Shown: positions 17,361-64,000 of the stretch, in pieces | Layout of the letters: every line of letters starts with the position of its first letter | How positions within the stretch are numbered: position 1 is the first letter of the stretch | Assembly (NCBI GenBank): GCA_016748015.1 | Contig: JAAOMT010000294.1 | Coordinates: 226,541 to 290,540 of the forward strand | From: Geosiphon pyriformis uo1 | Taxonomy: Eukaryota; Fungi; Glomeromycota | Direction: 5' to 3' | Length of the DNA: 64,000 bases | The notes under the pieces: generated by a model | The model's database searches: none | What the model was told of the DNA's origin: nothing | What the model saw: the letters and a program-made list of their open reading frames with translations, nothing else | Program-made: the position numbers and the translations under genes

Positions 17361-18800
17361 TATTACTGAAGATTTTTGGTTTCTTTTTTTAAATGTTGTT
17401 AATGTCTGTTTGCTGTAAATTTACATTTTCTGAAAGTAGTTGAATCTCTGATAACTGAATTTATTTTCAAATTATCTCTTATAATTTGAACCACTGGATT
17501 TATAAGTAGAATAACCAATTCTGTATCAGTTACTTTATATAGTTACATTGTAATAAAAGTCAACTTTTTTTTAAGAATTGTTTATCTAAAAACTTACTAA
17601 AATATGTAATTATTTTGTAATAAAAGTCAACTTTTTTCCAGAAATTGCTTGTCTAAAAGCTTACTAAAATATGTATAATTACTTTATAGTAAAATTCAAC
17701 TTTTCTACAGAAATTTTATTTGTAGACTATCCAAATAATTATAATAAAAAATAAATAAATAAATATAAAAAATATAAAAAAATTGGAATTCATTAAAAGA
17801 ATTGTTTTTTATTCAGATCTGGAGTTACTAACAAATTACTGAAATTGATAATTAATTAATTTTAAAATATTAATTGTGTTTTAGACAATATTAAGTATAA
17901 ATATTTTAAGAATTGGTTTTTAAAGTATTTTAATTTTAATTTTAAATTGTACTACTGAGAATAAATATAAAGTAAGATATCTATAATAAGATAATTTTAA
18001 AGGAAGATATATTTTTTTAAAGAAAAAAGCTCTTCTTTTATATAATTTGTTATAGTACTAGTTTATAAACTAGAACTTTTTTCTTTGTTATGATTTAGAC
18101 AAACTAAAGATACATTTTAATAAACTACAAATTATTTTGATAAACTATTAATTATTTAGTATATTATCTATTATTTTGGCAAATTTTTTACAAATTTCAG
18201 TGAATTTTTAAATATTATATAGTTTAAAATATTGTGTAATTTGATTATTCTAATTTTTATTGCACAAATTAGGATATTAATTAAATAATAATATTTAATA
18301 ATTTAATTAAGTAATAAGTAATAATTAAAATAATATTAATATATACTAATTAATAATAAAAATTATAAGAGTAATTTCATGCTAATTAATAGTTAAAATT
18401 CTACTAATAACATAATTTTTTTCTTAAGACTGAGCTTTATTGAAGTTCAAGTACTATTTATAATATCAAGATAGTAGTCCAAAATAATTAAAATAATTTG
18501 GTCTGAAAATTGTTAAAATTTCAGTTCTGTAAGTTTGTTAATATATTAAATTTTCATTGATTAAAATATTGAATTTTGTAAGACATTTTCACAAGTATTA
18601 AATAGATTATAGAGTTTAAAAGCTGCTCTAAGTTTGTAATAAATGTTTGTTAATCTAGTTGTTGTTTTGAATTTGTTGTAAATTTAAATTAATTTAACTT
18701 TAATAAGTTTTTTATTTTTTATATTAATGCTTTTAATGTCTCTTTTAATATTATTTTGTTTTAAAAAAAACATATTATAGTTTATAATAATAGAATTTTA
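17361..18800 (-). mobile_element. Truncated Gypsy copy of the 43659-53506 family: 3' LTR (17361-18412) plus adjacent internal end
   Basis: 17361 tattactgaagatttttggttt matches tgttaccgaaggtttttggtct. LTR end taataaca at 18412 is followed by sequence matching 44641 onward (cttaagactgagctttattgaagttcaagtact). The right boundary is approximate. Confidence 0.8.
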
Positions 18801-18949
18801 TAATAAATTAAAAAAACTATATAATTACCAAAAAAATATTTTACAGTAATAATTTATTACTTATTAGAATAAATATTTTATAAAAAAAGATTTAATATTT
18901 ACATTAATTATTAAGCTTTAATTTAGTTAAAAAATAAAAAAAAGCTGGA

Positions 18950-19979
18950 CCACAAAAAAAATTTTCTATTAAATAATATATCTAAATAAATATAACTATA
19001 ATATTAAATATTACAAAAAAACAAACAATTAAAACACAAATATTTTATTTTAATTAATTATTTAATAAAATAAACAGATTAACAATATTAATTAATTTAA
19101 TTATTAATAAAACTATTTTAAATTAAATACAATGATAAACTTAAAAAACTATTTAATATTTATCAAATTTTTAGATAAAAAACAATATTTGTTAAAATAC
19201 AATTAACAGCAAAGAAAACATTTGTAAAAACAATCAAATTTTTATTTAATTTAACAAAATTAATTATTTTAAAGAAATTAAAAAAATCTTGATTAATCAC
19301 AAAAAATTATTTTATCTTTAATTTGTTAAAATATTAAAAAAAAGTGTTAAATCTTAAAATAATATTACAGAAAATTGTATAAAAAAAGAGTTTTTTTTTC
19401 AAAAAAATATATTTTAATTTAAAATTAAATTTTTATTAAATATTTTATCTTAGAATTAACAATTAATTATTACAAATCAATTTAATAAAATTATTTTAAA
19501 AACTTAAATCCTTAATTATTATTGTTTTAAAATTACTTATTCCAAATTAATATTTTAAAATTAATTAATTACCAATTTTGGTAATTATTAATATCTTTAG
19601 ACTTAGATTTATAATAACTTTTTTAAACTTATTTTATTATTATTTTTTTAATTATTTTAATTATTTTTTATTTTTTTTATATTATTAAATAGCTTATAGT
19701 TAAAATTTCTTATAGGAAAGTTGACTTTTATAGCAAAGTAACTATATATTATTTAAAAAACTTACAAATAAAATTTTTTTGTAAAAAAATTGATTTTTAT
19801 TACAAATAACCATATAAAATAATTGGTACAGAATTGGCTATTTTATTATAAGTCTAACAATATATATAGTTTAAAATCTAGAAAAATATTTTTAAAAAAA
19901 AATTGATTTATTAAAACAAAATTAACAGCAAAATAACATTAACAACAACAAAAAAAAAGTAGAAAAATCTTTAATAACA
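18950..19979 (+). repeat. Highly degraded LTR of the same family in the opposite orientation
   Basis: The reverse complement of ~19963-19979 (tgttattaaagattttt) matches the LTR start. ~19370-19430 and ~19700-19810 reverse-complement to internal LTR blocks (aagtcaac units). The left edge is approximate. Confidence 0.65.
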
Positions 19980-20099
19980 ATAGTTTTTATTACTATAGTG
20001 TTTACAATTTATGCAATTTTTTTTAATTGAAAAATATTTAGTAAAACCAAATTTGAATATAATTAATATTTTTATAAATAATTTCCTAATAAATTTAGA

Positions 20100-21250
20100 T
20101 TTATTTAATATTATTAATAAAACTTTTGTCTTTTTTAACAAGTTAAATTTGGATGTAAATATTTAAATTTATGATTTAATATTATTAATATTAATTAAAT
20201 TACAAGTTATTGTTTTGGCTTTTAAGTATGTTTTAATATTAAATATAATTGTAATTTATTTTAATAATTAAACAGTCTTATATATATATGTTTTTAAGTT
20301 TAAGTTAATTTTGCCAAATTTTTACAATTATTATTAAATAAAAAAACATCAGATTATAAACATTATTTTTAATAAAAATATTTTTGTTATCTGATTTAAA
20401 ATTAAAAAATACTTAAATATTATAAATAATAAAATAATTAATATTTTAATTAATATAACAGTTTATTTCAATTTAAAAATTTTTTTTTAGCAAATATATT
20501 TTTATATTTAAGAATATTTAATACTTTGTTTATAATATATATAAAACTGTATATTATGTTTAATAAAAAACTAAGTTTAATACTAATATAATTAATAATT
20601 TTATAATTAAGAATATTAATTAAAAATATAGTCTTTTGGTATAATATTTTAATTTATATATGCTGTTTAAATTCATGAATAAGCTTTTAGTTAATTAATA
20701 TATTTATATAATAAAAATAGTTTATAATCAATTATTTATAACAATTAAAAAATATTTTTATAATAAAGTTTATTTTAAAGTTTTTATGTATATTATAACA
20801 AAAAAAAGTTTTTAAATTAAAGTTTACTTACAAAATAAATATAAAAAATTATTATTAGTTTTTAATAATTATTAAAATTTCTTGACTAAAATACAGTTAT
20901 TGTTTTTGTTAATTTTACAAATTTTGTTTTTTACATATTTAATAATAGATTATATACTATTTTTTGTAAAGACTTTGTTTTTAAAAATTGGTATTATAAA
21001 ACTTTTTTAGTTTTTAATAATATTAAAGTTAATTTTTTGAAATTAATAATATTTATACAATAGTTAATTATTAATTAGAAAAACCAAAAAAACAATAATA
21101 AATAACTTTGTTATTATATATATTTTTTTAAAATAAAAACTAATATAATACATATTAACAATATTATCTTTTCAAATACAGTTTTTATAATATATATATA
21201 TATTCTTTTACATAGTATAATTTGTTTTTAAATTGTAAACTTAAAATTAA
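20100..21250 (+). mobile_element. Extremely AT-eroded LINE 3' fragment (RNase H region)
   Basis: aaattacaagttattgttttggct...gtaatttattttaataattaaacagtctta at ~20198-20280 is a transition-decayed ELQAIxLAL...YSDSQAAL block. ~20401-20435 resembles VKGHSGxxGNE. Confidence 0.5.
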
Positions 21251-21425
21251 GTACATATTTTTTATATATAAATAATTTTAAGTTTTAAATATATTAATAA
21301 TATAATAATAACTAATTAAAAATTTTTAAAATGATAAAAGCGAAAGATTGAGAAAAAGTATTTTTTTTCATCTCAACTATCTCAACATTATATAATAAAA
21401 AGTTGCCTCATAGACATCGTTAGTA

Positions 21426-24214: not shown

Positions 24215-25030
24215 TGAACTGGAACCAAAAAATATAATCGAAATATCAAAGGCACCAGAATTCTTTTAAAGTATAATGGTAAACAATTGTTTCAAACCTG
24301 TATTTCTATCAAGCTAGGATTTTAGTGGTGGGATTAATGGTAAGACAGAATGTAAATCTTTTATTAAAATTTCAAAATTCAAATTATTTTTTAATGTTAA
24401 TATTTTGTATTTAATATTCTTTTATTTTGAAAATTAAAAACTTTAAAATTTTTGTTTCTTATTATAAAATACTTAAATATATATTTTATTTTAATATTTA
24501 TATTTTACAATAAAAATTATTGGCAAAATTTTTAATTACTTTTATTTTTTAATTATATAACAATTATTTTGTTTAATTTAATTAATTATTTTTCAATTAT
24601 AAAACTCTTATTTGTATTTTTATTTATTGAAATATAAAATTAAATAAAAAAACAATCATTGTAGTTGTTAAATGCTAAAAATTAATTTAAATTTTGTATT
24701 AGCAAAATTTTTTTTTAAAATAGAAACCTTTTTACCAGCCAACAAACATTATAATTTAAGTGACCCAAGAATCTGCGAAACCACCTTAAATATTTGGGAA
24801 AAATATCAATCAAAAACCCAACGAATCAGTTACTTAGGCCTGTTGAGCTAGTTATTTTGCTGCAGGGTTATTTCTTTTTTTGTCGTTTTGTGTTTCTTTT
24901 TATGCAACACAAACAGCAAAATTATTAGCATAAAAATTCAAGCTCTTGTCTTTTCATACTACTTTTTTAGCCTTTTTTTTCACTTTACAAAACACCCCTA
25001 TCACCAAGTTAGTAGTAACAATCTATCAAG

Positions 25031-27391
25031 ATGTCTTCAGATCCACAGAACGACGACCTCATTGACTACGAAGAAGAGGAAGAAGCAGTCCAACTAGAAG
25101 CCGGATCAGGACAGACCACAGGCAACGGTGAAGCTGGAGGTGAAGAGCAAAAAGATAAAAAAGGAAGTTATGTTGGTATTCATTCAACAGGCTTCATGGA
25201 CTTTTTGCTCAAACCTGAATTACTGCGAGCAATTGTAGATTGTGGTTTTGAACATCCTAGTGAAGGTGTGTATAACTTGCTTTTAACTTTCGACAAAACA
25301 ATAGAATTGCTTTTCTCTATTTTGCTGCGCCACACAACATCCTTTTACTCCACGGCACACATGAAAATATTAAAAGGGCACGTTTGATAAAACCAAAATT
25401 TTCAAAAATATTTCCCTCAATATGTAATCAACATTATTTAAATTTTGGCTTGATTAGCCTTGTCTATTCAAATTTTCAGATGAATTCTTGTATCCACAAA
25501 TAATGTATATCTACTCATATCAGATCAACCTCAGATAGCAAAGTTCTGATTATATCGTTATACAATCTTAATTTTGCTCAGGTGTGCCAAACTGCCCTTT
25601 TCTTATTTTCCTGCCCGTTCAATAATTCGCATGTGATACCTCCTATCCGTCCGAAAAAAAAAACTGAAACATGCCGGTTCAGCAAAATTTGAATGTTAAC
25701 CACCCACGGACGTATTTCATCAAGATGGTTTTGCTGACTTTTATCCATATCAGTACAACAGGAATGTATACCCCAATCTATCCTAGGAATGGACGTACTC
25801 TGCCAAGCAAAGTCTGGGATGGGAAAAACCGCCGTATTTGTGCTTGCGACCTTACAGCAAGTTGAACCTTCTCCTGGCGAAGTCTCCGTTATCGTGCTCT
25901 GTCATACGAGAGAACTTGCTTTCCAGATTCGAAATGAATATTCAAGATTTAGCAAATATACCCCCGAAATCAAGATCGATGTCTTCTATGGTGGTATCCC
26001 TATCAGAACTGACTATGAGAAGTTTCGAAACAAAGAAACCACCCCTCACATCGTTGTTGGCACACCCGGTCGAGTTCTTGCTCTTGTGAAAGAGGGCCAT
26101 CTTAAAGTTGGCGGTGTAAAACATTTCGTCTTGGATGAGTGTGATAAGATGCTGGATCAGCTTGGTGAGTCTTCTTTGGACTATATAATTTGATTCTTAA
26201 TAAAAAAATGATGAGAATTTTCAGCTCTTTAACCCAGCTCGTCTAAGGTTGCATAAATTATGTTATCCTTGTGAGAAAAATAATTTCTTCTGAAACAGAA
26301 AAATCGTGCCTCAAAAAACTATGGATGAAAATTTTCTAAATTCAACATTTATTCATTATATAATAGACATGCGGCGCGATGTGCAGGAAATTTTCCGTAA
26401 GACTCCTCATAGTAAACAAGTAATGATGTTCAGCGCCACGCTCAGCAAAGACATCCGCCCAATATGCAAAAAGTTCATGCAAAATGTAAGGATTCTCGGC
26501 TCTATCTCATGGGCTGTCGATTCCCTAATATTACATCATAATCGAAGTCCCCAACTCAACTGGCCAATCTCCTACTTTACTTCACACAGCCACTTGAAAT
26601 TTATGTTGATGATGAAGCCAAGTTAACATTGCATGGTCTGCAACAACACTATGTCAACTTGCAAGAGTCCGCGAAAAATCGCAAGCTGAATGACCTATTG
26701 GACTCGCTAGAATTTAACCAAGTGTGCATTTTCGTCAAATCGGTCCAACGTGCTGACCAATTGAACAAGCTTTTGTGCGAATGCAACTTTCCCAGTATTT
26801 GTATTCATGGTAAAATGACTCAAGAAGACCGGTATATATTTTTCATTTTATTCGTTGAGTTTTTTGGTAAATACATCAGAATATAAATTATAGTCTCCCT
26901 TTGAACACAGAATCCACAAGTACAAGTTGTTTAAGGAATTCTCCAAACGAATAATGGTCGCTACCGATATCTTTGGTCGAGGTATCGATATTGAGCGTGT
27001 GAATATTGTAATCAATTACGATATGCCAGACGGCCCTGACACATATTTGCATAGAGTCAGTGTCTTTTCACAGGAGCTTTTCGTGTCCTTTCGTGTTCGC
27101 ATCTCCGGATAACTTTGTCATTATTCTTATTTATCAATACATAGGTTGGTCGTGCTGGTCGTTTTGGTACTAAAGGTCTTGCCGTGACTTTCGTGGCTAA
27201 TGAGGAAGATGCCGAGATACTCCAGAAAGTCCAGGAACGCTTCGAGGTCAACATTACGGAGCTCCCTGCTGACATTGAGATTAACAACTACAGTAAGTCG
27301 ATTTCCTGGTCTCCAATTAATTTTTCACCAGGAATCCAACTAATATTCCATAAAAATGAAAATGATTTCTTTTTTCTCAGTGGCTTCTTAA
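25031..27391 (+). CDS. SUB2: DECD-box RNA helicase Sub2/UAP56 (DDX39), 7 exons
   Basis: [52 protein letters not shown]. Exons 25031-25265, 25754-26164, 26367-26485, 26590-26831, 26911-27055, 27145-27292 and 27381-27391, all GT-AG and phase-consistent. Confidence 0.97.
25323..25753 (+). promoter_or_regulatory. Structured cis-regulatory RNA element in SUB2 intron 1 (putative)
   Basis: 488 nt intron. Complementary arms 25352-25400 / 25570-25618. Hairpins 25629-25674 and 25679-25737 with complementary loop hexamers. Candidate PTC-containing cassette exon 25480-25581. Confidence 0.6.
26205..26296 (+). ncRNA. Intronic box C/D snoRNA candidate targeting LSU rRNA GAGCUGGGUU (snR69/snR71-type target region)
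   Basis: Box C ATGATGA 26208-26214, box D CTGA 26290-26293. Guide AACCCAGCTC(G) at 26231-26241 is complementary to the conserved LSU rRNA sequence UGAGCUGGGUU. Lies in the 202 nt SUB2 intron 2. Confidence 0.75.
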
Positions 27392-33608: not shown

Positions 33609-34834
33609 TTTCCCCTATTCACGTCTAGAACCTCGCTTTCTCGTTATCTGGGTAACGTGAGCTTTTTTACTTTCTAGCGCCCTATTTACGCGCTGAACAA
33701 AAAACGAATACTATGAGACACGCTGAAAATTGGGTAATTTGGTGAAGATGGGGTCTATTTATAAAACTTTGGGAATCACAAATGACAAAAGGAAATTGGC
33801 AGATTGGTGCAACAATGCATAAAATTTGTGCATTTGTGTCACTAGACCCGCGGAAAGTTTAATGATCAGGTTTGATCACCAGCAATATAACTCAGAATAG
33901 CCATAATAATCATTTGATTCACCAATCAGAATGGTTAACGCTATCTTTTATCTAATAGACTAATAATTATAATTATGATATAGTTGATAATTTCATTTTC
34001 CATCTAAAATTCTGGAGGTAAAAATTTTCTTTGAAGATCGCCGAGCAACAAATTTTGTCCGAGTAATATTTAAGCTTAATATATATATTGAGGAAACCAC
34101 ATAATTAGGACTATAGCGGGTGAGAAAAAAGAATTTCGCATTTTCCATAAGACGCATTTTATTATAATCCAAAATCAACGAGATGAGAGAACATTTGGAA
34201 TTTTTGAGTTTTAGCAAAGTGGATTCCTCTAAAAAATCAAACACTTGGGCTCTATTATTTAAATGGAATAATAATATCCAGATCAAAATTCACTATCCTC
34301 ATCAATTTGTTTCGAGAAGACGCCCAAAAGCAAGATAATCGAATTAAACTCGAGCAGAGCCACTTTGACCCCATCAAGACCAAATATTTAAATAATTTGG
34401 TAAACTGATTTTCTGATAATCTATTCTCGTTGCTACCACGGAACACGAAATTTAAACTTAAAACTAATTGTATTATTGTAATTTAAATTTTATAAGTTAA
34501 ATACTCTGGAATTATATTTTTAACTATCAAAAGCTCAAACTCAATATGTATTTTGCACAAAATTCCAACTTGTGGTTAAAAACTTGGAAAAATCCTGCTT
34601 CTTAGTTTATTTATACAAATATTAATGATAACTTAAAATAATATTGCAATAAATTATATAAATATTTAGAATTTATTATTTTAACAATTTTTAAAAAATA
34701 CAAATTAATTGTTGTAGTTTTTAAATTTAAATTATTTAACAAATTTTACATTAATATTAAAAAATAAATTTTATTTTTAATTGTTATTATTATTATTGCT
34801 TCTTTTTGTATATAAACGCCGCATTCGTTATTGC

Positions 34835-34835
<1 letters not shown>

Positions 34836-34886
<51 letters not shown>
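34836..34886. repeat. (TAA)n microsatellite, ~17 units
   Basis: Uninterrupted taa repeats read directly. Confidence 0.95.
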
Positions 34887-34888
<2 letters not shown>

Positions 34889-35395
34889 TAAAAGCGCACT
34901 TTTTACACGTGACTAACCAGTTTTTAATATTATGTAATTCAAATAAATTTTGTTTAAGTAAATAAAATATTTTAATCAAGTTATAAAAAATTAAGAATTC
35001 ATTATTAAACATAAAAATACATTGATTTAACATATACAATATATTAATTATTTATTATATTATAATTAAAATTATTTTTTGCCTTAAATTAATTAATAAT
35101 ATTTAGTTTATTATAATAAATTTTTTTGGTATTAATTAATTATTTTAATAAATCTAAATCTAAATTATTATTATTATTATTATTACAATATTAATTTTAA
35201 ATATATAGTTTTTATTACTTTAAATTTGTTGATTATTAAAGATTTTATATTAGTTTTACATATAAAGATTTTTTGTTTTTGTCTTTCTAACAAAGGACCA
35301 ATAACCTGTAACCACGCCAATATTTATTATTTACAAATGTTCTATGCCTCGCAGTTATTCCGTTCGCTCTTGTTCACCTATTATCAAGAGTCCTA

Positions 35396-41183: not shown

Positions 41184-43099
41184 TTCGAGAACAGAGATTC
41201 TATTGGGTAGCCGCTCGAGTTTTTCTCTCCAATAAAGCAAATGGGTTCAACCTCGAAGAGTACTGGAAAAATATTTATACACAATATAAGAACAGCGACG
41301 AAAAAACTGCAGAGAAAGTGAAATTAGAACTTAAAGGTCAATGCCATCATTACTATCTCACTTTCTTGAGTTAGAAAATAGTTCATTTTGCACGTGAAAA
41401 ACATGTGAGTCAAAAAGGCCTAGTCTATAATTTTCAAGATAATAAAAATATTATTAATCAATCTTTCCAAATTATTTTGATTTTTGATTTTATTATAGTA
41501 AATATAATTCATAATAAACGATATAAAAAATATTTATAAGTTTTTTACATTAAACTATGAAAACGTTCAATGTTAGATAAAAATATTTGTATTATTTGGT
41601 TTATTTATTTTAATTATAAATAAATAAAGTTTATAAACTTATTTTAATTTTAAATATTCTATATTTAATATAATAATTTTTGTTTTATATTTGTCTTTTA
41701 TACTTTTATTATTATAATAATAAATATATTTTGTTAATAATTTTATAATAATTAATTTTTATACTATTAAATTTTTTATATAAATTAAAATATTAATTTA
41801 ATATTTTTAAAAAATAAGTATAATTATTTTATTTATTTATTTAATAAGTAAGATTTAAACATAATTTAGTATAATACATCAAACTAAATAATTTAAACTA
41901 AACATAAATTATGTATTTTTATATGTAACTAATTATTTAGACTGATTAAAACAATATTATATATCTATTTTAATAAAAACCAAATTGTTAATACTAAAAA
42001 TAAATAAATATAATCTATATATATTAAAATTAATATCAAATATCTTAACAATTCTAAGCAATTTTATAATATTACCAAAAAACAAAAAACTGAAAACTAT
42101 TAATAATAGACAATATTAAACTATTTTAAAATATTACATCACTTTTTTTACAATTACTCTATATTTAAAATAAATTAATTAAATTTTATTTTAATATATT
42201 GTTCTAAGATTATATACAAATTTTATAATTTTACTAATTATAATTTTAATATTTTTAATATTATTTTCTAAAAACAAAATCTTTATTTAAAGTTATATAT
42301 ATTATATTATTAAATACATATAAAAAAACAATTATAATATACATAATAATAATCTGTAAAAACCAAATATTAACTTTTATAAAACAATATATAAATTTAA
42401 CAACTACTTATAAGTATTAAAATTTATTTTATAAGAGAAAAAATAATTAAAAAATACAATTTTATTATAATAAAAACATAAAATACTATAATAAATATTT
42501 ATTATATAATTATTTTTATATAGCTATAGACAAATAGCAATTATATAAAAGTTAAAATGCCAAATTAAAAATAATCAAATTTAATTAATATTATTTAATA
42601 AATCATTACTTAAAATTTTAATATTAGATTTAACTTTTTAATAAGCATAATTGACTGTTTAAAAATATTATAAATAAAATATTATATGGTTTTTAAAACA
42701 GTTATGTATTTATTCTTAATAAATTTTTAATAAATATAAATTAATAATACCAAATCTAAAAAAATAGCTCTAATTAATATATTAATTTTATTATTACTCA
42801 AAATATTTGAATAGTTTTTAATTTTTAATAAAACAATATAAAGCTTTTTATTTTTAATAATATTTAAAATATAATATTATTTTAGCTAATAATAATTATA
42901 AAAATCAAATAAAATCAAATTTAATTTAAATAAATATGTATTTAAAATAATATAGTTGTTTAAATATATTATAATAATATTGAAAAAAAATATATTTTAA
43001 TACTAATACAATAATTTGTAATTTAACTATTGTAAAAAAAACCAAATCAAATATTTTAATACTAATAATCAAATTTAATTTCTTAAAAAATACAATAAT

Positions 43100-56500: not shown

Positions 56501-59500
56501 CTTTTATTAAAACAGAAATTTTCTATGTATTTGTTAATTGTTTTTCTAATTAGAACATCTTTGACAACCCTAAATTTATAGTATTTAGACCTATAGTACT
56601 TTTTTCAGATTCTTGACAAGTGACATTAAATTAACCTCAAACTTTTTCTATTATCAATTATAATATACAACTTAGAAGCCTTTTCACTATCAATAATAGA
56701 CCATGTATTAATTAAACAGTTAGTTTTAGAATCTTGAATTAAACTTAAACTCTTTGCCAACTTGACTATTAATAACTCAAGCTTAAAGAATTTTGATGAC
56801 TGCTTATTTTTTAAACACTCAAACTCACTAAACCAGAACTTAGAAAAAACTTCATCAGCAGAATTAATTATCACATCCTTCAAAATATTTCACATAGTGT
56901 CTAAATCTTCATTATCTTTTACATTATTGAAATCAACCAGTTTCTCCAAAAATTTGCCTAATGAACACTCTCTAAAATATGATCATTTGTTATTATCAGC
57001 ATCCTTAATCTTAAACTTCCATTTATCTCTATTAATTTGTTTATAATTGCTGTTGAAACAAGCATCCAAAAGACTATTCAAACTAACTGAGACCAAAATA
57101 GCATTGTAATCTATATCAAAAAATTTAAAAACAGAAACAATCTTATAATTAATTACTGCAAACATCAAACTTTTACTTATAAAGATGTAATCAATAAACT
57201 TCTTAACACCCCTTGAATTGCTCCAAGTAAAAGCTTTAATCAGCAAATATTCATTAAAAGAATTAATCAAGCCTAAATTCAAGCAGAACTTAAAATTCAC
57301 ACTTTTTTTAGATCTATTTTCATTGAAATTTCCACTTAAAACTGTAAACATGGAAGAATTAATAGTCTTAGCAATAAAAAAGTTGATTTTTGAAGCCTAA
57401 CTGAACTTGACTTCAGTAAAAGCACAAGCATATAAACCTAAAACCATAACTGACAGCTTGTCTCTAAAAAGAAGCTGAACTAAAACAAGACAACTAGAAA
57501 CTTTTTTAATCTTAAAAACATGATATACAAGAAAACTATTCATAATAATTGCCATTCTAGCACCAAGAAACTCTTTGTCCAAGCCAGACAAAAATATTCT
57601 CATTTCATCAAATTTGTTTATAATCTATGGCCTGATACCAGATTTTAACTTTGTTTCTGTAATAATAAAAACCATATTTTTTAATTCTTTATGCCAATAA
57701 ACAATATCTTCTTGTTTGGCAAAAACATTGAAACTTTGAACATTACATGTAACAAACTTCCATACCAGATTTATTATTGGGAAGAATAAGCAATAGGAAC
57801 CAAATCAGCATTGTCTACTTTGGCTAATAGACCTATAATTGTGACTAAAAGTGTCTTTCAATTTAGAGATAACCAATAAATCAAAAACCACCACTCCTAC
57901 AATAGTCTTACCACAAATGACCACACCTGAATCTTCACTTATTACTATATCTGCCTTTTGATTCTGTGATCAAAAGATTACCAATAGTTGATGTTCAAAA
58001 CTAGATTAAGAAATCAATAATCCAGATGTGTTTAATCTTTTAGCCAATTTATTAATGTGTTTTGCAAGATTGATAAGACTACACTTAAAAGTGAGAAATT
58101 TATCATTTAATTCTATAGACACCAGTAGAATAAATTTTATTTTCAAAAAGATACCAAAATCAACCAAGTTATTTTATACAAAAAGAGGAGAGAAAGAAGA
58201 TTTACCAATAATTTTGGCCCAAGAGACATCACTAAAAGAAACAGGATAGGCAATTGGCACTAAACATTTAGCATAAATAGATACCAGTCTGCTTTTATTA
58301 TTCTTTAACAGCACTCTATGAAATAGACTACTAGAAAAAGTTTTTCCATTTATAGAACAATTCAGTAAAGTATGACTCAATTTTTTATACTTAGCATACT
58401 TTGCTGAACTCAGATAAGCTCAGTGCAAATTGGCACTTTTCAAAACTGGCATGGTTCTTATGACAGCATCCAATAACTCAACAAAATCAAAGCAAATAGT
58501 AGTACATCTGGCTTGGGTATATAAAATTAGATAATGATCAATAACACATGTTTTCTTATCTACAGAGCCAATTAAGTTCCAAATATTATGAGCATTAGTT
58601 TTTATTGGCAGTGTATAGAGCAGTGCTCTATAATAATTTCTTGTATTTTATGTTAACTTGTTTTAATCTGCTCTAGCAATATACATAGCATCTTTTCTGA
58701 TTAAGATAGACCAGTTTGCTGCGACCAAATCAGTCTGGTCTGATTGATTAAACTCCATTACAGCTTTTTGCTACAGTTTCACCAACTGCATTTTGATCGA
58801 CTTAATCAACTCATATTCAGAAAATACAGCATAATTAGTCTTAACTAATGTACCAATTGAGATTTTTTTTAATACTACAGTTTAATTTGAACATACAACA
58901 GATTTTTTAAGATCAGCATTTACTGTGATCTTTACAACTATTGCCATATTGGATGTTTGGGCCAAGCTTAATTTAGAAATGAACATTACTTTGATAATTC
59001 TAGCAAATTTTGAAGAAGTAAAGACCCTTCCAAAATCATTAATTTTTGAAAACAGTCTTTTCATCACCACAAGCTTTTCCTGAGAAGATTTTCCAACCAT
59101 TTTATTCAAACCAATATTTAAAGCAAATAATTTTTTAACTGGAATATTAACCAAAACTTTTAAGAAAGAAAAAAGAGTTAGATAAACATCTAAAAGAACA
59201 TTATTATTATCATTACTTAAGAAATTAATCTTTCTCAATGGTTTTTTCAAAGTCTGCTTGGTCTTTAATCATGAACTTTTGGGTGTTTAATTAGGATTTT
59301 CTACAGCAAAAATACTTTTATTACTATAGTTAAAGCTAGTTTTTTTGACCAAACACTTCTCTTCTATGTTTACACTATCAGATTTGGTGGGGTCACTAGC
59401 TTTCAAGCCCTATAAACAACCACTTAGCACCTTAGCAGAATTTTCTTTGTTGTTAATATTATCTTCTAAAATATTACTTCTTCTTTTTTTCCTTGACAAA

Positions 59501-59600
59501 ACAGTTTTGAAACCATCATTAAAGTCAGAACTTTCAATAGTCTTCTTTATGACAACAATATTAAGGCCAACAATGGTCTCATAATTAAGTAAAAACGGTT
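53507..59600 (-). mobile_element. Degenerate LINE (ORF1 with zinc knuckle; ORF2 APE-RT-RNase H-Cys/His motif)
   Basis: ORF1 remnants 57780-59590, including a decayed CxxCxxxxHxxxxC at ~58350-58405. APE start LVWKFVTCNVQ...KQEDIVYWH at ~57690-57772. TWSNSRGVKKFIDYIF (ORF 56983-57351). RT block at ~55450-56050. RNase H LFLDSQA at ~54180-54195. Same organisation as 13468-17360. Confidence 0.88.
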
Positions 59601-59799
59601 TAGATTTACTGTACTGAATAATAAAAACTTCTTTTCAAAAAAAAAACTTTTTAGACTCTTTTTTGAGAATTTAGAATAAAAAAGAGAAAAAAAAATTTTT
59701 ATTTGTTGCCTATTTTTTATATTAATTATATTTAAATTTTTAAAAAAATTATTAATGTAAATATTAATAATATTCAAATTATACCAAATAAACTGCCTC

Positions 59800-62700
59800 T
59801 TATTAATAAAAATTTATTTAAATAAAGCATATTAAATGATTAAAAATTTACAACTATATGTAAAGCAATATGTTAAAAGCTATATTATTCAAATAAGCAA
59901 TTGCTAATTTAAATTAATTGAAAATTAAATCTTAAAAATCTAATTTTTTTCAATAATAAAAATTTTTTTGATTAAAAATATATTTTTTTAATATCTAATT
60001 GTTTTATAAAAATAATATTAAATCTTTTAAATAAATAGAAAACAAAAAAAATAAAATTATCTAAAACTAAAAACAAATTATTTACAAAAAATATATTATA
60101 TTTTCAAAAAATTATTTATTAAACTGGTTTTTAGCCAAATAAAAAATTATAAAAGATAATTAAGAAACCAATTTAAAATTTGCAAATTTAATAATTTATA
60201 ATTAAATAAATAATCAAAAATATTATTAGTATTTAATAAATTAATTATTAATGCTATTTTATTTTTAGCTTGTATTATAATTATATTTTTATATAAATAT
60301 TTAACAAATATAATTCAACCACTATTTAGAAGTTAGAAACAAATTAAGTATTCTAGTGTTAAATATAATTCACATATTTTTATATGTAATTAGCTATTTG
60401 AACTAGTTTAAACTATATTATACTAATACAATAGAAAAAAATTTACCCAAAAAAGACATTTTTTAAACTATTTTAAATAAAATAACATTACAAAAAACCA
60501 ATCTAATTAGTTATTTAGCTGTTTTCAAGAAATTAGTTTTAACTTTAACAGATTTATAAATTCAAAGTAATATTAAATTAAAAAATATTTTATTATTAAT
60601 AACAACTTAATCTACAGAACTATCAAACATATCAACATTATTCATGAAATATTTTTTCTTTAATAATATTACTTTTTTTTCAACTTATCAATAATTTTAT
60701 TAAAAACATTCAGATATATTATAAGTTTATTAATCTTAAAACTAAAAACATTACTCAAAACATAATTACTCTTAATAAATTATTCAAATATAATTATTAA
60801 AAAACTAACAGATTTAGCAATAAATTTAACCAAAGTAGTTAACTTGACCAAATCAGATTCCAAAAAAAGCCAATCAAAAAAAAATCAAAGAATTATCAAT
60901 AATTACAGAAAAAAAAAAAAAACTGTTAAAAAAAAATTTAGAAGTGTTCACAAAAACAGAAGTCTTAACATAAAACTTAGCACTTATAAATAAAATACAA
61001 ATATCTTGAAAAAAAAGATGAAGACATTTTATAATTCATAATTAGATAATCTATTTTTTAATATCTAAAATAGTATTAATAACCAAGAGTTTTCTACTAG
61101 ATATAATATTTTCTTAGTGTATTAGTTTTTAATTATTGTAATATTCAAGTTTACTTAAGAATTAAATATAATCAGTACAAACTGAAAATAACAACCAAAT
61201 TTAGATAAATAGAAAATAAAACAAGATTAATTACCAATTTAAAAAATAATATTACTAATTTCAAAAACAATACAATTAAAAAGAAGATTAAATAACTTGG
61301 TTTTAAATCTGTTTTAGACAAAATAGTTTTATTTTAATTTACCAAAAAAAAATTTTAGCACTATTTTTGTTTACAAAAACAAATTAATGACCAAAAGCAG
61401 ATATAGCAGTATTTAATTTCTTAAAATATTCAATCACATATTGTTAAATATCAGTAAACTTTAATATAATATAAGCAAATTTACTAAAAACATTAAATAT
61501 TGTCTTAATATTAACAGCAAATATACTCAAAGACATATAATACAGTATAATAACAACAAAAAAAAATCAAATTCAGAAACTACCAAAAATTTGGCAATTT
61601 TAAAAATAATTAAGTATATAAAGCTTGTAAACTCAACCAGAAATACATTTTTTAGAAACTTTTAAAAAGCAAATTCTATATAAAACAGTTTTATATTGTT
61701 TTTTAATACTGATTTCGCACTTAAAAAACCATGTACAAATTAAAAAACAGTCTTAATATAAGCCAGTTTAATCTTAAAAATAGCACTAAGCACTAAAATA
61801 GAAGCCACTTATTTAGCAAATTTTTGATAACTAAAAATAGTTTCTTAAGTATTATTAATAACAATATTAAATACTAATAAAAAAAATATTTTAGTTTTTA
61901 TCTAATCAGTTCAGTTTTTAAGAACAGATAATTCAATAAGAGATTGTTGTTTTGCTTCTAAAATCAACAATAATCTGTCAAAAAACATTATATTGACAAC
62001 ACAGTCAGTAGTTAATTTTAGCCTATTTTAAATAACAAACTAAATAATATAATAGAAATCTTATCTAAAATTTTATTAAAAACCATAAAAGAGTTCAGTA
62101 TAATAATAATAATAAAAACAAATAACTGTTTCTATTTTTTTAAATCTTTGGTTTTTTTGATTATTATTTTTGAAAAAATAGTACTAAAAGCATTAAATAT
62201 AAAAACTATAATAGAAAAGATTAGCTTATTGACTAATCTGTTATTGAACACTTTTGGACTTTTAAAAAAAATAAAGGCAATACTAAAATTGATCCAAGTA
62301 TATTTTTTTGAAAAAATTTCAATTAACAAAAAACCAGTTAAAAAAAAATGATATAATAACTTTTAAAAGCAGTTTTTTATTATCATTAACTAAATAGAAA
62401 ACTTTTACAATGTTTTGTTTAGCTGTTTTTACAATAAAAAAAACTTTTTTAATTGAAACTTTATAAAATACTATTACAGATTAAAGTAACAAGCTAACAA
62501 ATAGCAAGAAAAAATAGGATTGTAGAGTAATAAAATTAATTAAAAAAGATTTAATTTTAAGAAGTGAATTGAATAAATATATATTTAATATGTAAAATTA
62601 GTTTTATAAAATATATTAATTTTATAAAATATCTTAATCACTATTTTTTCAAAAGATAACTGAAAATTTTGAAGGTAGAAAAATAATTTGTACTGTCAAT

Positions 62701-64000
62701 AAATAATAATACACTAGTATAATTCTATGTCTTATATTAATATTTTTAGAATTTAATATTAAATATTAGATATACTTTTCAGTTATGTTTTATTTAATAA
62801 TCTTCAAATACTATAATTATATAAATCAGAAAAAAGATAAGTAAATGTCAACAAGTAATTTTTTATTTTAAAATATTTAGATGCTTAAAGATAAAAAAAA
62901 GAAATAAGTGATATAAAAAAAATTAATATAATAGTTATTATTTTATTTATTTTTAATTATTTGTTATATTGATATTTTCTACAGCTAAAAAACTTATTAC
63001 TTATATAATTATTAAAAGTGGTCAATAATCAAGTTAATAATCAAGTCATTAATCAGGTTAATAATTACTATCTAAAAATAAGATGGCTAATTATATAATA
63101 TTAGTAACTAATACATATAATAACTAATAAAAACTAGAGTTTCAACCATAACATTATTTTTTTTAAAAAGATTGAGCTCTGACAAAATCAAGCTATTTAT
63201 AGAATAATTTATTTAAAAGGTTTTGTCTAACTCAAAACTAACTAGTTTATTGAAGTTTTTTGTAGATAAAGTATATAATAATTAAGATAAAATAAGTTTT
63301 ATATCCAAAAAACCAAATTTTTATATAAGAGTTTTGGTTCTTTTAGCAATGATTAAAATTCTTGAGATATCTAATCATATAATATTCAAAATTTCTATCT
63401 GTATTTTTAAAGTTTTTTTTTCAAAAGCTTTATGTTTTTTATATTTTTACTAGGATAACCATAAAGCTTTAATTGTTTTCTATATGACAAGTTTTTGTCT
63501 ATAGACAAAATTTCTAAGATTGTTTTTCCAATTGTGATAGAAAATAAAAATATTGCTGCTATTATGCTTTCTAGCAGATATTTATCCATTTTGCTATTAA
63601 TTTTTTTTCTTTTGGTAGTTGTTTTCTTTGGTCTAATAACAGTATATATTCTATTGTTATTAGTTATAATAATCTATTTTCTAATAGTTAAAGTAATATT
63701 TGGATAATTTTTAATCTAATACTCATAGAAAATATAAAAAGCATTTTAAATGTTTTGATCCAAAAAATAATTGTCTATATCAATTAAAGATATTTTTGTT
63801 TTAAAAATGGTGCATTTATTTATATCTAATTTTTGTTGATTATTTAGATCAGTATTATTACAACAAATTACCAATTAAGTTATTTGTGATATTTTTTGAG
63901 TTGTATACCATAAATAGAGCAATTATTAAAAATTGTTTTATATTAATCTTGTAAAATATATAAAATATTATTCAAAACTTTGTTGATTATAAAGAGTTTT
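59800..64000. mobile_element. Strongly eroded repeat-derived DNA, probably further LINE fragments
   Basis: Nearly CpG-free, very AT-rich and strand-skewed like the neighbouring LINE relics. No intact motif could be read with confidence. Confidence 0.35.

Follow-up and report, generated by a model that had tools for sequence, protein, structure and literature searches.

The SUB2/UAP56 gene and its first intron

The window analysed here is a stretch of 64,000 nucleotides (nt) from the genome of Geosiphon pyriformis uo1 (contig JAAOMT010000294.1, positions 226,541 to 290,540), and our subject is the first intron of its SUB2/UAP56 gene, which encodes a DEAD-box helicase and lies at 25031-27391 of the window on the forward strand, as do all gene and duplex features given below. 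This intron is predicted to be closed by a long-range RNA duplex, and long, duplex-closed first introns recur in the SUB2 genes of other fungal lineages. Direct reading of the sequence and tracking of the reading frame resolve the gene into seven exons. Exon 1 (25031-25265) starts with the ATG at 25031, comprises 78 codons plus 1 nt and ends, in translation, with ...GFEHPSE, the same point at which all homologues end their exon 1. Intron 1 (25266-25753), delimited by direct reading together with the frame of exon 2, measures 488 nt and has the donor GTGTGT and the acceptor CAG; its probable branch site, proposed from the fungal CTRAY consensus, is CTGAC at 25734-25738, with the A at 25737 standing 16 nt before the 3' splice site. 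Exons 2-7 occupy 25754-26164, 26367-26485, 26590-26831, 26911-27055, 27145-27292 and 27381-27391. In separate searches with each translated exon, exon 2, whose translation begins V-QQECIPQ at 25754, was matched by the DEAD domain profile PF00270.

An earlier reading made from the sequence alone (hereafter, the sequence-only reading) had drawn attention to the unusual length of intron 1, and its coordinates all proved correct when we read the sequence directly. The 488 nt of intron 1 compare with 79-202 nt for the other introns of the gene (202, 104, 79, 89 and 88 nt for introns 2-6, by frame tracking), and with the gaps of ~40-80 nt that interrupt DEAD domains elsewhere in the genome according to a PF00270 search; intron 1 is exceptional in length by both comparisons. 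Intron 2 (26165-26366), at 202 nt, is itself about twice the usual length for this gene.

The site of intron 1, after EHPSE in phase 1, is common to every genomic homologue seen, and its position is conserved across fungi. SUB2 is present in a single copy in the 128-Mb assembly, where the next-best matches to exon 2, at 37-40% identity, are other DEAD-box genes. This rules out a comparison between paralogues, and it also means that intron 1 must be spliced productively. The encoded protein departs from its homologues at one codon of exon 1 (25196-25198), which reads Met (FMDFLL) where 45 of the 45 homologues inspected have Arg, within an otherwise invariant motif. The Sub2 with this substitution is nevertheless the sole copy, and the remainder of the protein appears intact.

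A long-range duplex predicted within intron 1

Two segments of intron 1, a 5' arm at 25352-25386 and a 3' arm at 25588-25618, had been described as reverse-complementary by the sequence-only reading. This was confirmed by an inverted-repeat search, which returned a 21-nt core of the arms with 86% complementarity, and by folding, since the arms pair with each other in the minimum free energy (MFE) and centroid structures both of the isolated intron and of 25340-25630. By a local duplex calculation the core amounts to ~27 base pairs (bp), or to 38 bp with the outer extensions, and the free energy to -30.4 kcal/mol. In a joint fold of exon 1, intron 1 and exon 2 (1134 nt), 21 arm-to-arm pairs had a probability of at least 0.97, and pair probabilities were 0.97-1.0 across 25363-25386, bulged positions excepted. 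The pairing is not perfect, as the arms contain bulges and indels.

In intron coordinates the arms lie at positions 87-121 and 323-353, and the branch A at 472. The duplex thus begins 86 nt from the 5' splice site, ends 135 nt from the 3' splice site and encloses 201 nt, with a span of 267 bp including the arms. An outer helix, between 25320-25327 (TTTTGCTG) and 25680-25687 (CAGCAAAA), is predicted in the MFE structure of the isolated intron only.

Other pairings that had been proposed around the duplex fared less well. The additional helix between CAAAATT (25394-25400) and AATTTTG (25570-25576) is present as sequence but is used neither in the MFE nor in the centroid structure. As for the mutually exclusive folds, the complementarity between GGCACAC and GTGTGCC is real, but the complementarities involved extend over 5-11 nt and are at chance level in an AT-rich intron of 488 nt; a stretch of 600 nt holds 16 inverted pairs that are 10 nt or longer, GGCACAC/GTGTGCC being one of them. 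A rough count places the direct repeats that look like the real splice junctions (D1, D2 and D5) at chance level too.

The duplex compared with chance and with known elements

The strength of the duplex was measured by the highest-scoring gapped inverted repeat whose arms are separated by 60-900 nt. With this statistic intron 1 scores 41, compared with 24.9 +/- 3.2 in dinucleotide shuffles, none of which (0/200) reaches 41. Shuffling in 40-nt blocks, which preserves regional composition, gives a z-score of 4.9, and one of 100 such shuffles attains the score of the intron. The fold energy of 25340-25630 has a z-score of -4.27, with 0/200 shuffles as good. An RNAduplex calculation between the two halves of the intron was discarded as a statistic; it proved uninformative because helices become chained over the whole length. 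We conclude that the long-range duplex is real as a complementarity, robustly predicted as a structure and statistically supported.

Only ~26.5 kb of the window have a local GC content of at least 0.30, and the AT-rich blocks are not comparable. Within the GC >=0.30 DNA there are the SUB2 duplex and one repeat of score 40, whose innermost pair is 21812/22021. Blocks of ~10-20% GC, at 18000-21300, 24400-24630, 34500-35200, 41500-43050 and 59400-63000, are packed with strong inverted repeats and palindromes, whose scores go up to 78 as against 41 for the SUB2 duplex on the same scale.

We also asked whether the duplex belongs to a known class of element. A BLAST search with 25340-25630 returned only itself from the 128-Mb genome, and in a search of the genome for the arm pattern the exact matches were the two arms only, with one-mismatch matches occurring at the rate of controls. 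No target-site duplication is visible around the arms, whose flanks read ...TACTCC and TCAATA.... The duplex is therefore unique in the genome, and membership in a family of miniature inverted-repeat transposable elements (MITEs) or foldback elements was rejected on the grounds of the missing second copy and target-site duplication. Comparison with Rfam 15 gave no match in intron 1, where the best hits, with E values of 4-6, lie far below gathering scores, and none in six other long UAP56/SUB2 first-intron loci (four from Pezizomycotina and two from metagenome contigs of a eukaryote), so a known RNA family or a small nucleolar RNA (snoRNA) host was rejected as well.

A candidate cassette inside the duplex

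The duplex encloses a candidate cassette exon of 102 nt (25480-25581), flanked by sequences that resemble splice sites and followed by a pseudo-5' splice site, GTGTGC (25582-25587), which borders the 3' arm on its inner side and, in addition, is complementary to 25354-25360. We defined candidates by simple rules, namely, for acceptors, YAG with at least 60% pyrimidines upstream and YTRAY upstream, and, for donors, at least 7 of 9 matches to MAG|GTRAGT. Under these rules 25480-25581 is the only cassette candidate in the intron and 25582 its only internal donor-like site, with 7/9 consensus matches versus 8/9 for the real exon-1 donor; 5-8% of shuffles hold at least one cassette candidate. The pseudo-donor is predicted to pair with 25505-25512, in a helix that is stacked on the main duplex but is not part of it, with a probability of being unpaired of 0.26 in the 1134-nt fold.

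Read on from exon 1 in its frame (phase 1), the cassette would introduce a premature in-frame TAG after 19 extra codons, whereas retention of the intron would read to the stop TGA at 25387-25389. The cassette and its stop-ending translation had thus been described correctly by the sequence-only reading, and they correspond to the only splice-site-like pair inside the intron. Judged by its sequence, the candidate cassette is mildly unusual and well placed for masking by the duplex.

Long first introns in other SUB2/UAP56 genes

For comparison we sampled homologues by a metagenome scan, followed by a query with an ascomycete exon 1 and contig look-ups. The best exon-1 identity to the Geosiphon gene among the relatives compared was 77% in a word search and 78% in the metagenome scan. 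These nearest relatives have an intron of only 73-160 nt at the same site, from which it follows that the extra 300-400 nt are derived in the lineage of Geosiphon.

A different situation was found in Pezizomycotina, an assignment that rests on the source names Podospora and Aspergillus. The set (L025, L026, L058, L100-L109 and L091/L094) amounts to nine distinct sequences, with exon-1 identities of 65-93%, and in all genomic SUB2 loci fetched from it intron 1 occupies the same site and measures 495-646 nt (L025:2730-3362, L058:2739-3340, L100:2245-2777, L102:1069-1663, L104:2245-2848, L105:2254-2762, L106:2266-2769, L108:2245-2748 and L026:2745-3390). Introns of Pezizomycotina are normally short. 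Each of the nine contains an imperfect long-range duplex of 32-52 bp. The distance from the 5' splice site to the duplex is 14-119 nt (67-119 in all but one), that from the duplex to the 3' splice site is 34-136 nt (71-136 in all but one), and 232-354 nt are enclosed; this layout resembles the 86, 135 and 201 nt of the Geosiphon intron. The repeat z-score averages 5.1 over these introns, with 8/9 at 3 or above, while 52 windows of equal length flanking them in the same loci average 0.39, with 1/52 at 3 or above.

The Pezizomycotina arms are common to the nearest subclade and differ in L102, L105, L108/L109 and L026, and the interiors of the introns are unalignable, the enclosed sequence not being conserved. 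In an analysis of 11 whole Pezizomycotina introns with MAFFT and RNAalifold, neither a consensus structure nor covariation could be established, because the interiors do not align and the CT/GA-rich arms slip. Under the rules given above, no cassette candidate was found in the nine Pezizomycotina introns, nor in two introns from metagenome contigs of a eukaryote (L083 and L087), and for this reason the recurring feature is, as far as sequence can tell, the stem and not a poison exon. The Pezizomycotina introns do share a conserved 5' start (GTCAGTTATnTnTCCTCCCTAC) and a conserved branch region (GTTAACAT), and their duplex pairs a CT-rich 5' segment with a GA-rich 3' segment.

At the site of intron 1 the two metagenome contigs have UAP56 introns that measure 452 and 429 nt (approximately L083:2627-3079 and L087:1559-1988), and both introns contain significant inverted repeats, with 0/200 and 2/200 shuffles, respectively, reaching them. 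Exon 2 of these genes reads VQHECIPQAILGMDI.... Two longer introns, of ~900 nt (L045 and L054), showed no significant repeat. We regard the recurrence of a long, duplex-closed SUB2 first intron across lineages as the most interesting outcome of this work; SUB2 is mentioned in neither of the two fungal structured-RNA surveys that were checked, and the recurrence deserves study.

A structural stem and its alternatives

The reading that we favour, tentatively and at a little under even chances, is that the stem loops out the central part of an over-long intron, so that the branch point is reached from the 5' splice site by a shorter path and internal decoys are masked, and that it thereby supports or sets the splicing of SUB2. 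Once the 3' arm has been transcribed, the duplex would close the central 201 nt as a separate domain, one that holds the only internal pair of acceptor-like and donor-like sites of the intron. Closure of this domain would cut the single-stranded path linking the 5' splice site with the branch point from 471 to ~204 nt. A stem of this looping-out, zipper-like kind could allow a spliceosome tuned to introns of 40-110 nt to remove one of 488 nt while keeping the internal decoy splice sites out of play, and it would set the splicing efficiency of the SUB2 pre-mRNA. We infer that the duplex would form in vivo and promote correct splicing, and that it may have been under selection in this lineage.

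Several results weigh against this reading. The sequence-only reading had proposed comparing fold energies with shuffled controls, and what speaks clearly for 25340-25630 is much weaker for the whole intron, whose z-score is just -2.0. Block shuffles of the whole window yield ~0.4 equally strong repeats per 26.5 kb of GC >=0.30 DNA, so that a choice of the best item in 64 kb would often turn up a repeat of this strength. Nor did the exon-by-exon PF00270 search of the genome provide a control set of long introns, as it recovered only the gaps of ~40-80 nt and two ambiguous ones of ~190 and ~310 nt. The nearest relatives compared, with at most 78% exon-1 identity, offer no orthologous arms in which covariation could be sought, and a search for sequence similarity between the Geosiphon intron and the long introns of the other lineages found none, the Pezizomycotina duplexes being not demonstrably homologous to that of Geosiphon. 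The difference in repeat z-score between the Pezizomycotina introns and their flanking windows has a Mann-Whitney p of ~1e-6, but between sequences that are phylogenetically non-independent; moreover, part of the signal comes from the CT-rich and GA-rich regional composition, as block shuffling lowers the z-score to 1.8-2.8 for most introns, although it stays at 7.3 for L058 and at 4.8 for L026. Finally, in yeast-type zipper stems the total linker, that is, the distance from the 5' splice site to the stem plus that from the stem to the branch point, is 42-85 nt (PMC12350175), whereas here it amounts to 86 + 118 = ~204 nt, and it would still be ~103 nt if the merely predicted outer helix 25320-25327/25680-25687 forms. 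The strict yeast range is thus exceeded, while the logic is, by analogy, the same.

The look-elsewhere effect, together with the fact that no close relatives are among those compared, makes a neutral origin a serious rival, even if we think it unlikely on balance. The intron would then have grown by a lineage-specific insertion or expansion, and the repeat would be a coincidence or a decaying relic, for instance of an old foldback or MITE-like insert, that is simply tolerated. The bulges and indels of the arms, the short introns of the nearest relatives and the dimensions of the element, whose 267-bp span with terminal inverted repeats of ~31-35 bp is MITE-like, would all suit such a history. 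However, the chance expectation per intron, as opposed to per window, is ~0.01, and neither the arms nor the interior have a second copy in the genome or a visible target-site duplication. A further argument against it is that a comparable layout is seen, independently, in other long first introns of SUB2. A third view, in which the closed 200-nt domain is itself the product, as a snoRNA-like non-coding RNA or a substrate of Dicer or RNase III with the duplex as its processing stem, is very improbable. Long duplexes are indeed substrates of RNase III, and human DDX39B hosts intronic snoRNAs, but the Rfam searches of this and the six other long first introns were negative, reading of the sequence showed neither C/D nor H/ACA boxes, and among Pezizomycotina there is no conservation of the enclosed sequence.

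The remaining alternative, distinctly unlikely in our estimate, is a switch that senses the helicase itself. At low Sub2 levels the duplex and the basal helices would hide the splice sites of the pseudo-exon and the intron would be removed whole; at high levels remodelling by Sub2 would lead to inclusion of 25480-25581 or to retention, and hence to a premature stop, nonsense-mediated decay and negative feedback. The cassette provides much of what can be said for it, being the sole splice-site-flanked candidate, with a donor that approaches the real one in consensus matches, borders the 3' arm and is paired in the predicted fold, and with an in-frame TAG upon inclusion. The retention of a long, structured intron 1 across Pezizomycotina, with their normally short introns, would also suggest a regulatory role, and a mechanistically identical device has been reported for plant DRH1/RH46 (bioRxiv 10.64898/2026.01.23.701338), while Yra1 and Chtop, partners of Sub2 in the TREX (transcription-export) complex, autoregulate via their introns (PMC2864733; PMC5175361). 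Against the switch stand the absence of a cassette candidate from the long introns of Pezizomycotina and of L083 and L087, the chance level of the alternative pairings of 5-11 nt, and the core of ~24 more or less continuous bp, which exceeds the 10-15 bp efficiently unwound by DEAD-box proteins (bioRxiv 10.64898/2026.01.23.701338). Autoregulation of SUB2/UAP56 through its own intron was not found in the literature searched. The switch is compatible with everything seen, but sensing of the Sub2 level would be pure inference. Its broader version, in which a duplex type conserved in long SUB2/UAP56 first introns, in Pezizomycotina and independently or anciently in this fungus, acts as a sensor, with Sub2 remodelling the stem in its own pre-mRNA to give a retained intron or the 25480-25581 cassette, strikes us as similarly doubtful.

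Comparison with known systems

The stem that we favour finds its closest parallel in the zipper stems and splicing enhancers of S. cerevisiae, such as those of RPS17B and RPL7B, in which the effective distance is likewise shortened and the enclosed sequence looped out (PMC12350175; PMC12311795). The arms at intron positions 87-121 and 323-353, together with the branch A at 472, agree with one positional criterion used for the yeast stems (PMC12350175). The duplex described here, at ~27-38 bp, is much longer than the yeast stems, and its host is a non-Dikarya fungus. The definition of the yeast stems calls for at least 6 bp supported with high confidence by probing in vivo, whereas the evidence here is a thermodynamic prediction, with probabilities of ~1.0 for 21 bp. 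The zipper stem of RPL7B enhances splicing through its structure, and an alternative fold is able to turn it off (PMC12311795).

For the sensor, the comparison is with the plant DEAD element (Burgardt et al.), in which a hairpin of 20 bp, located in a long DRH1/RH46 intron (DDX5 type), conceals an alternative 3' splice site. When helicase activity opens this hairpin, splicing shifts towards products that have a cassette, an alternative 3' site or a retained intron and that contain premature stops (bioRxiv 10.64898/2026.01.23.701338). In both cases a DEAD-box helicase gene has, in a long intron, a stem of at least ~20 bp, next to which lies an alternative splice site in the plant genes and a putative one here; the alternative products carry premature stops, as the candidate cassette would here, and sensing of the helicase's own activity has been shown or proposed. 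They differ in helicase family, DDX5-type in plants versus UAP56/Sub2-type here, and in architecture, the plant element being a local hairpin that hides a 3' splice site and the SUB2 duplex spanning 201 nt beside a pseudo-5' splice site. No sequence relationship links the two, and the SUB2 duplex is known here from sequence only. If the sensor reading were true, this intron would correspond in a fungus to what the DRH1 'DEAD' element is in plants, with a gene of another helicase family as its host.

Intron-mediated autoregulation was reportedly described for yeast DBP2 by Barta and Iggo in 1995. It is also documented for yeast YRA1 (PMC2864733) and human CHTOP (PMC5175361). These three share with SUB2 the combination of a dosage-sensitive messenger ribonucleoprotein or TREX factor and an atypically long intron, which in their case controls their own expression; they rest on experiments and are independent of any single long-range duplex. 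The SUB2 introns of Pezizomycotina, in turn, have gene, position, length (495-646 nt), imperfect duplex and splice-site distances in common with the intron of Geosiphon, and differ from it in the lack of sequence similarity, in their CT-rich and GA-rich arms and in having no cassette candidate.

Sub2/UAP56 is essential and dosage-sensitive and stands at the junction of splicing and mRNA export; to our knowledge, the mechanism that sets its level has not been established. A structured first intron recurring in distant short-intron lineages would give a concrete, mutable handle on the control of this level, and it would carry the themes of the yeast zipper stems and the plant DRH1 hairpin over to early-diverging fungi and another helicase family. 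Even the more modest reading, that of a stem needed for the splicing of an over-long intron, bears on how intron-definition spliceosomes handle long introns outside Saccharomyces, and the data-rich Pezizomycotina are well suited to the study of this recurrence.

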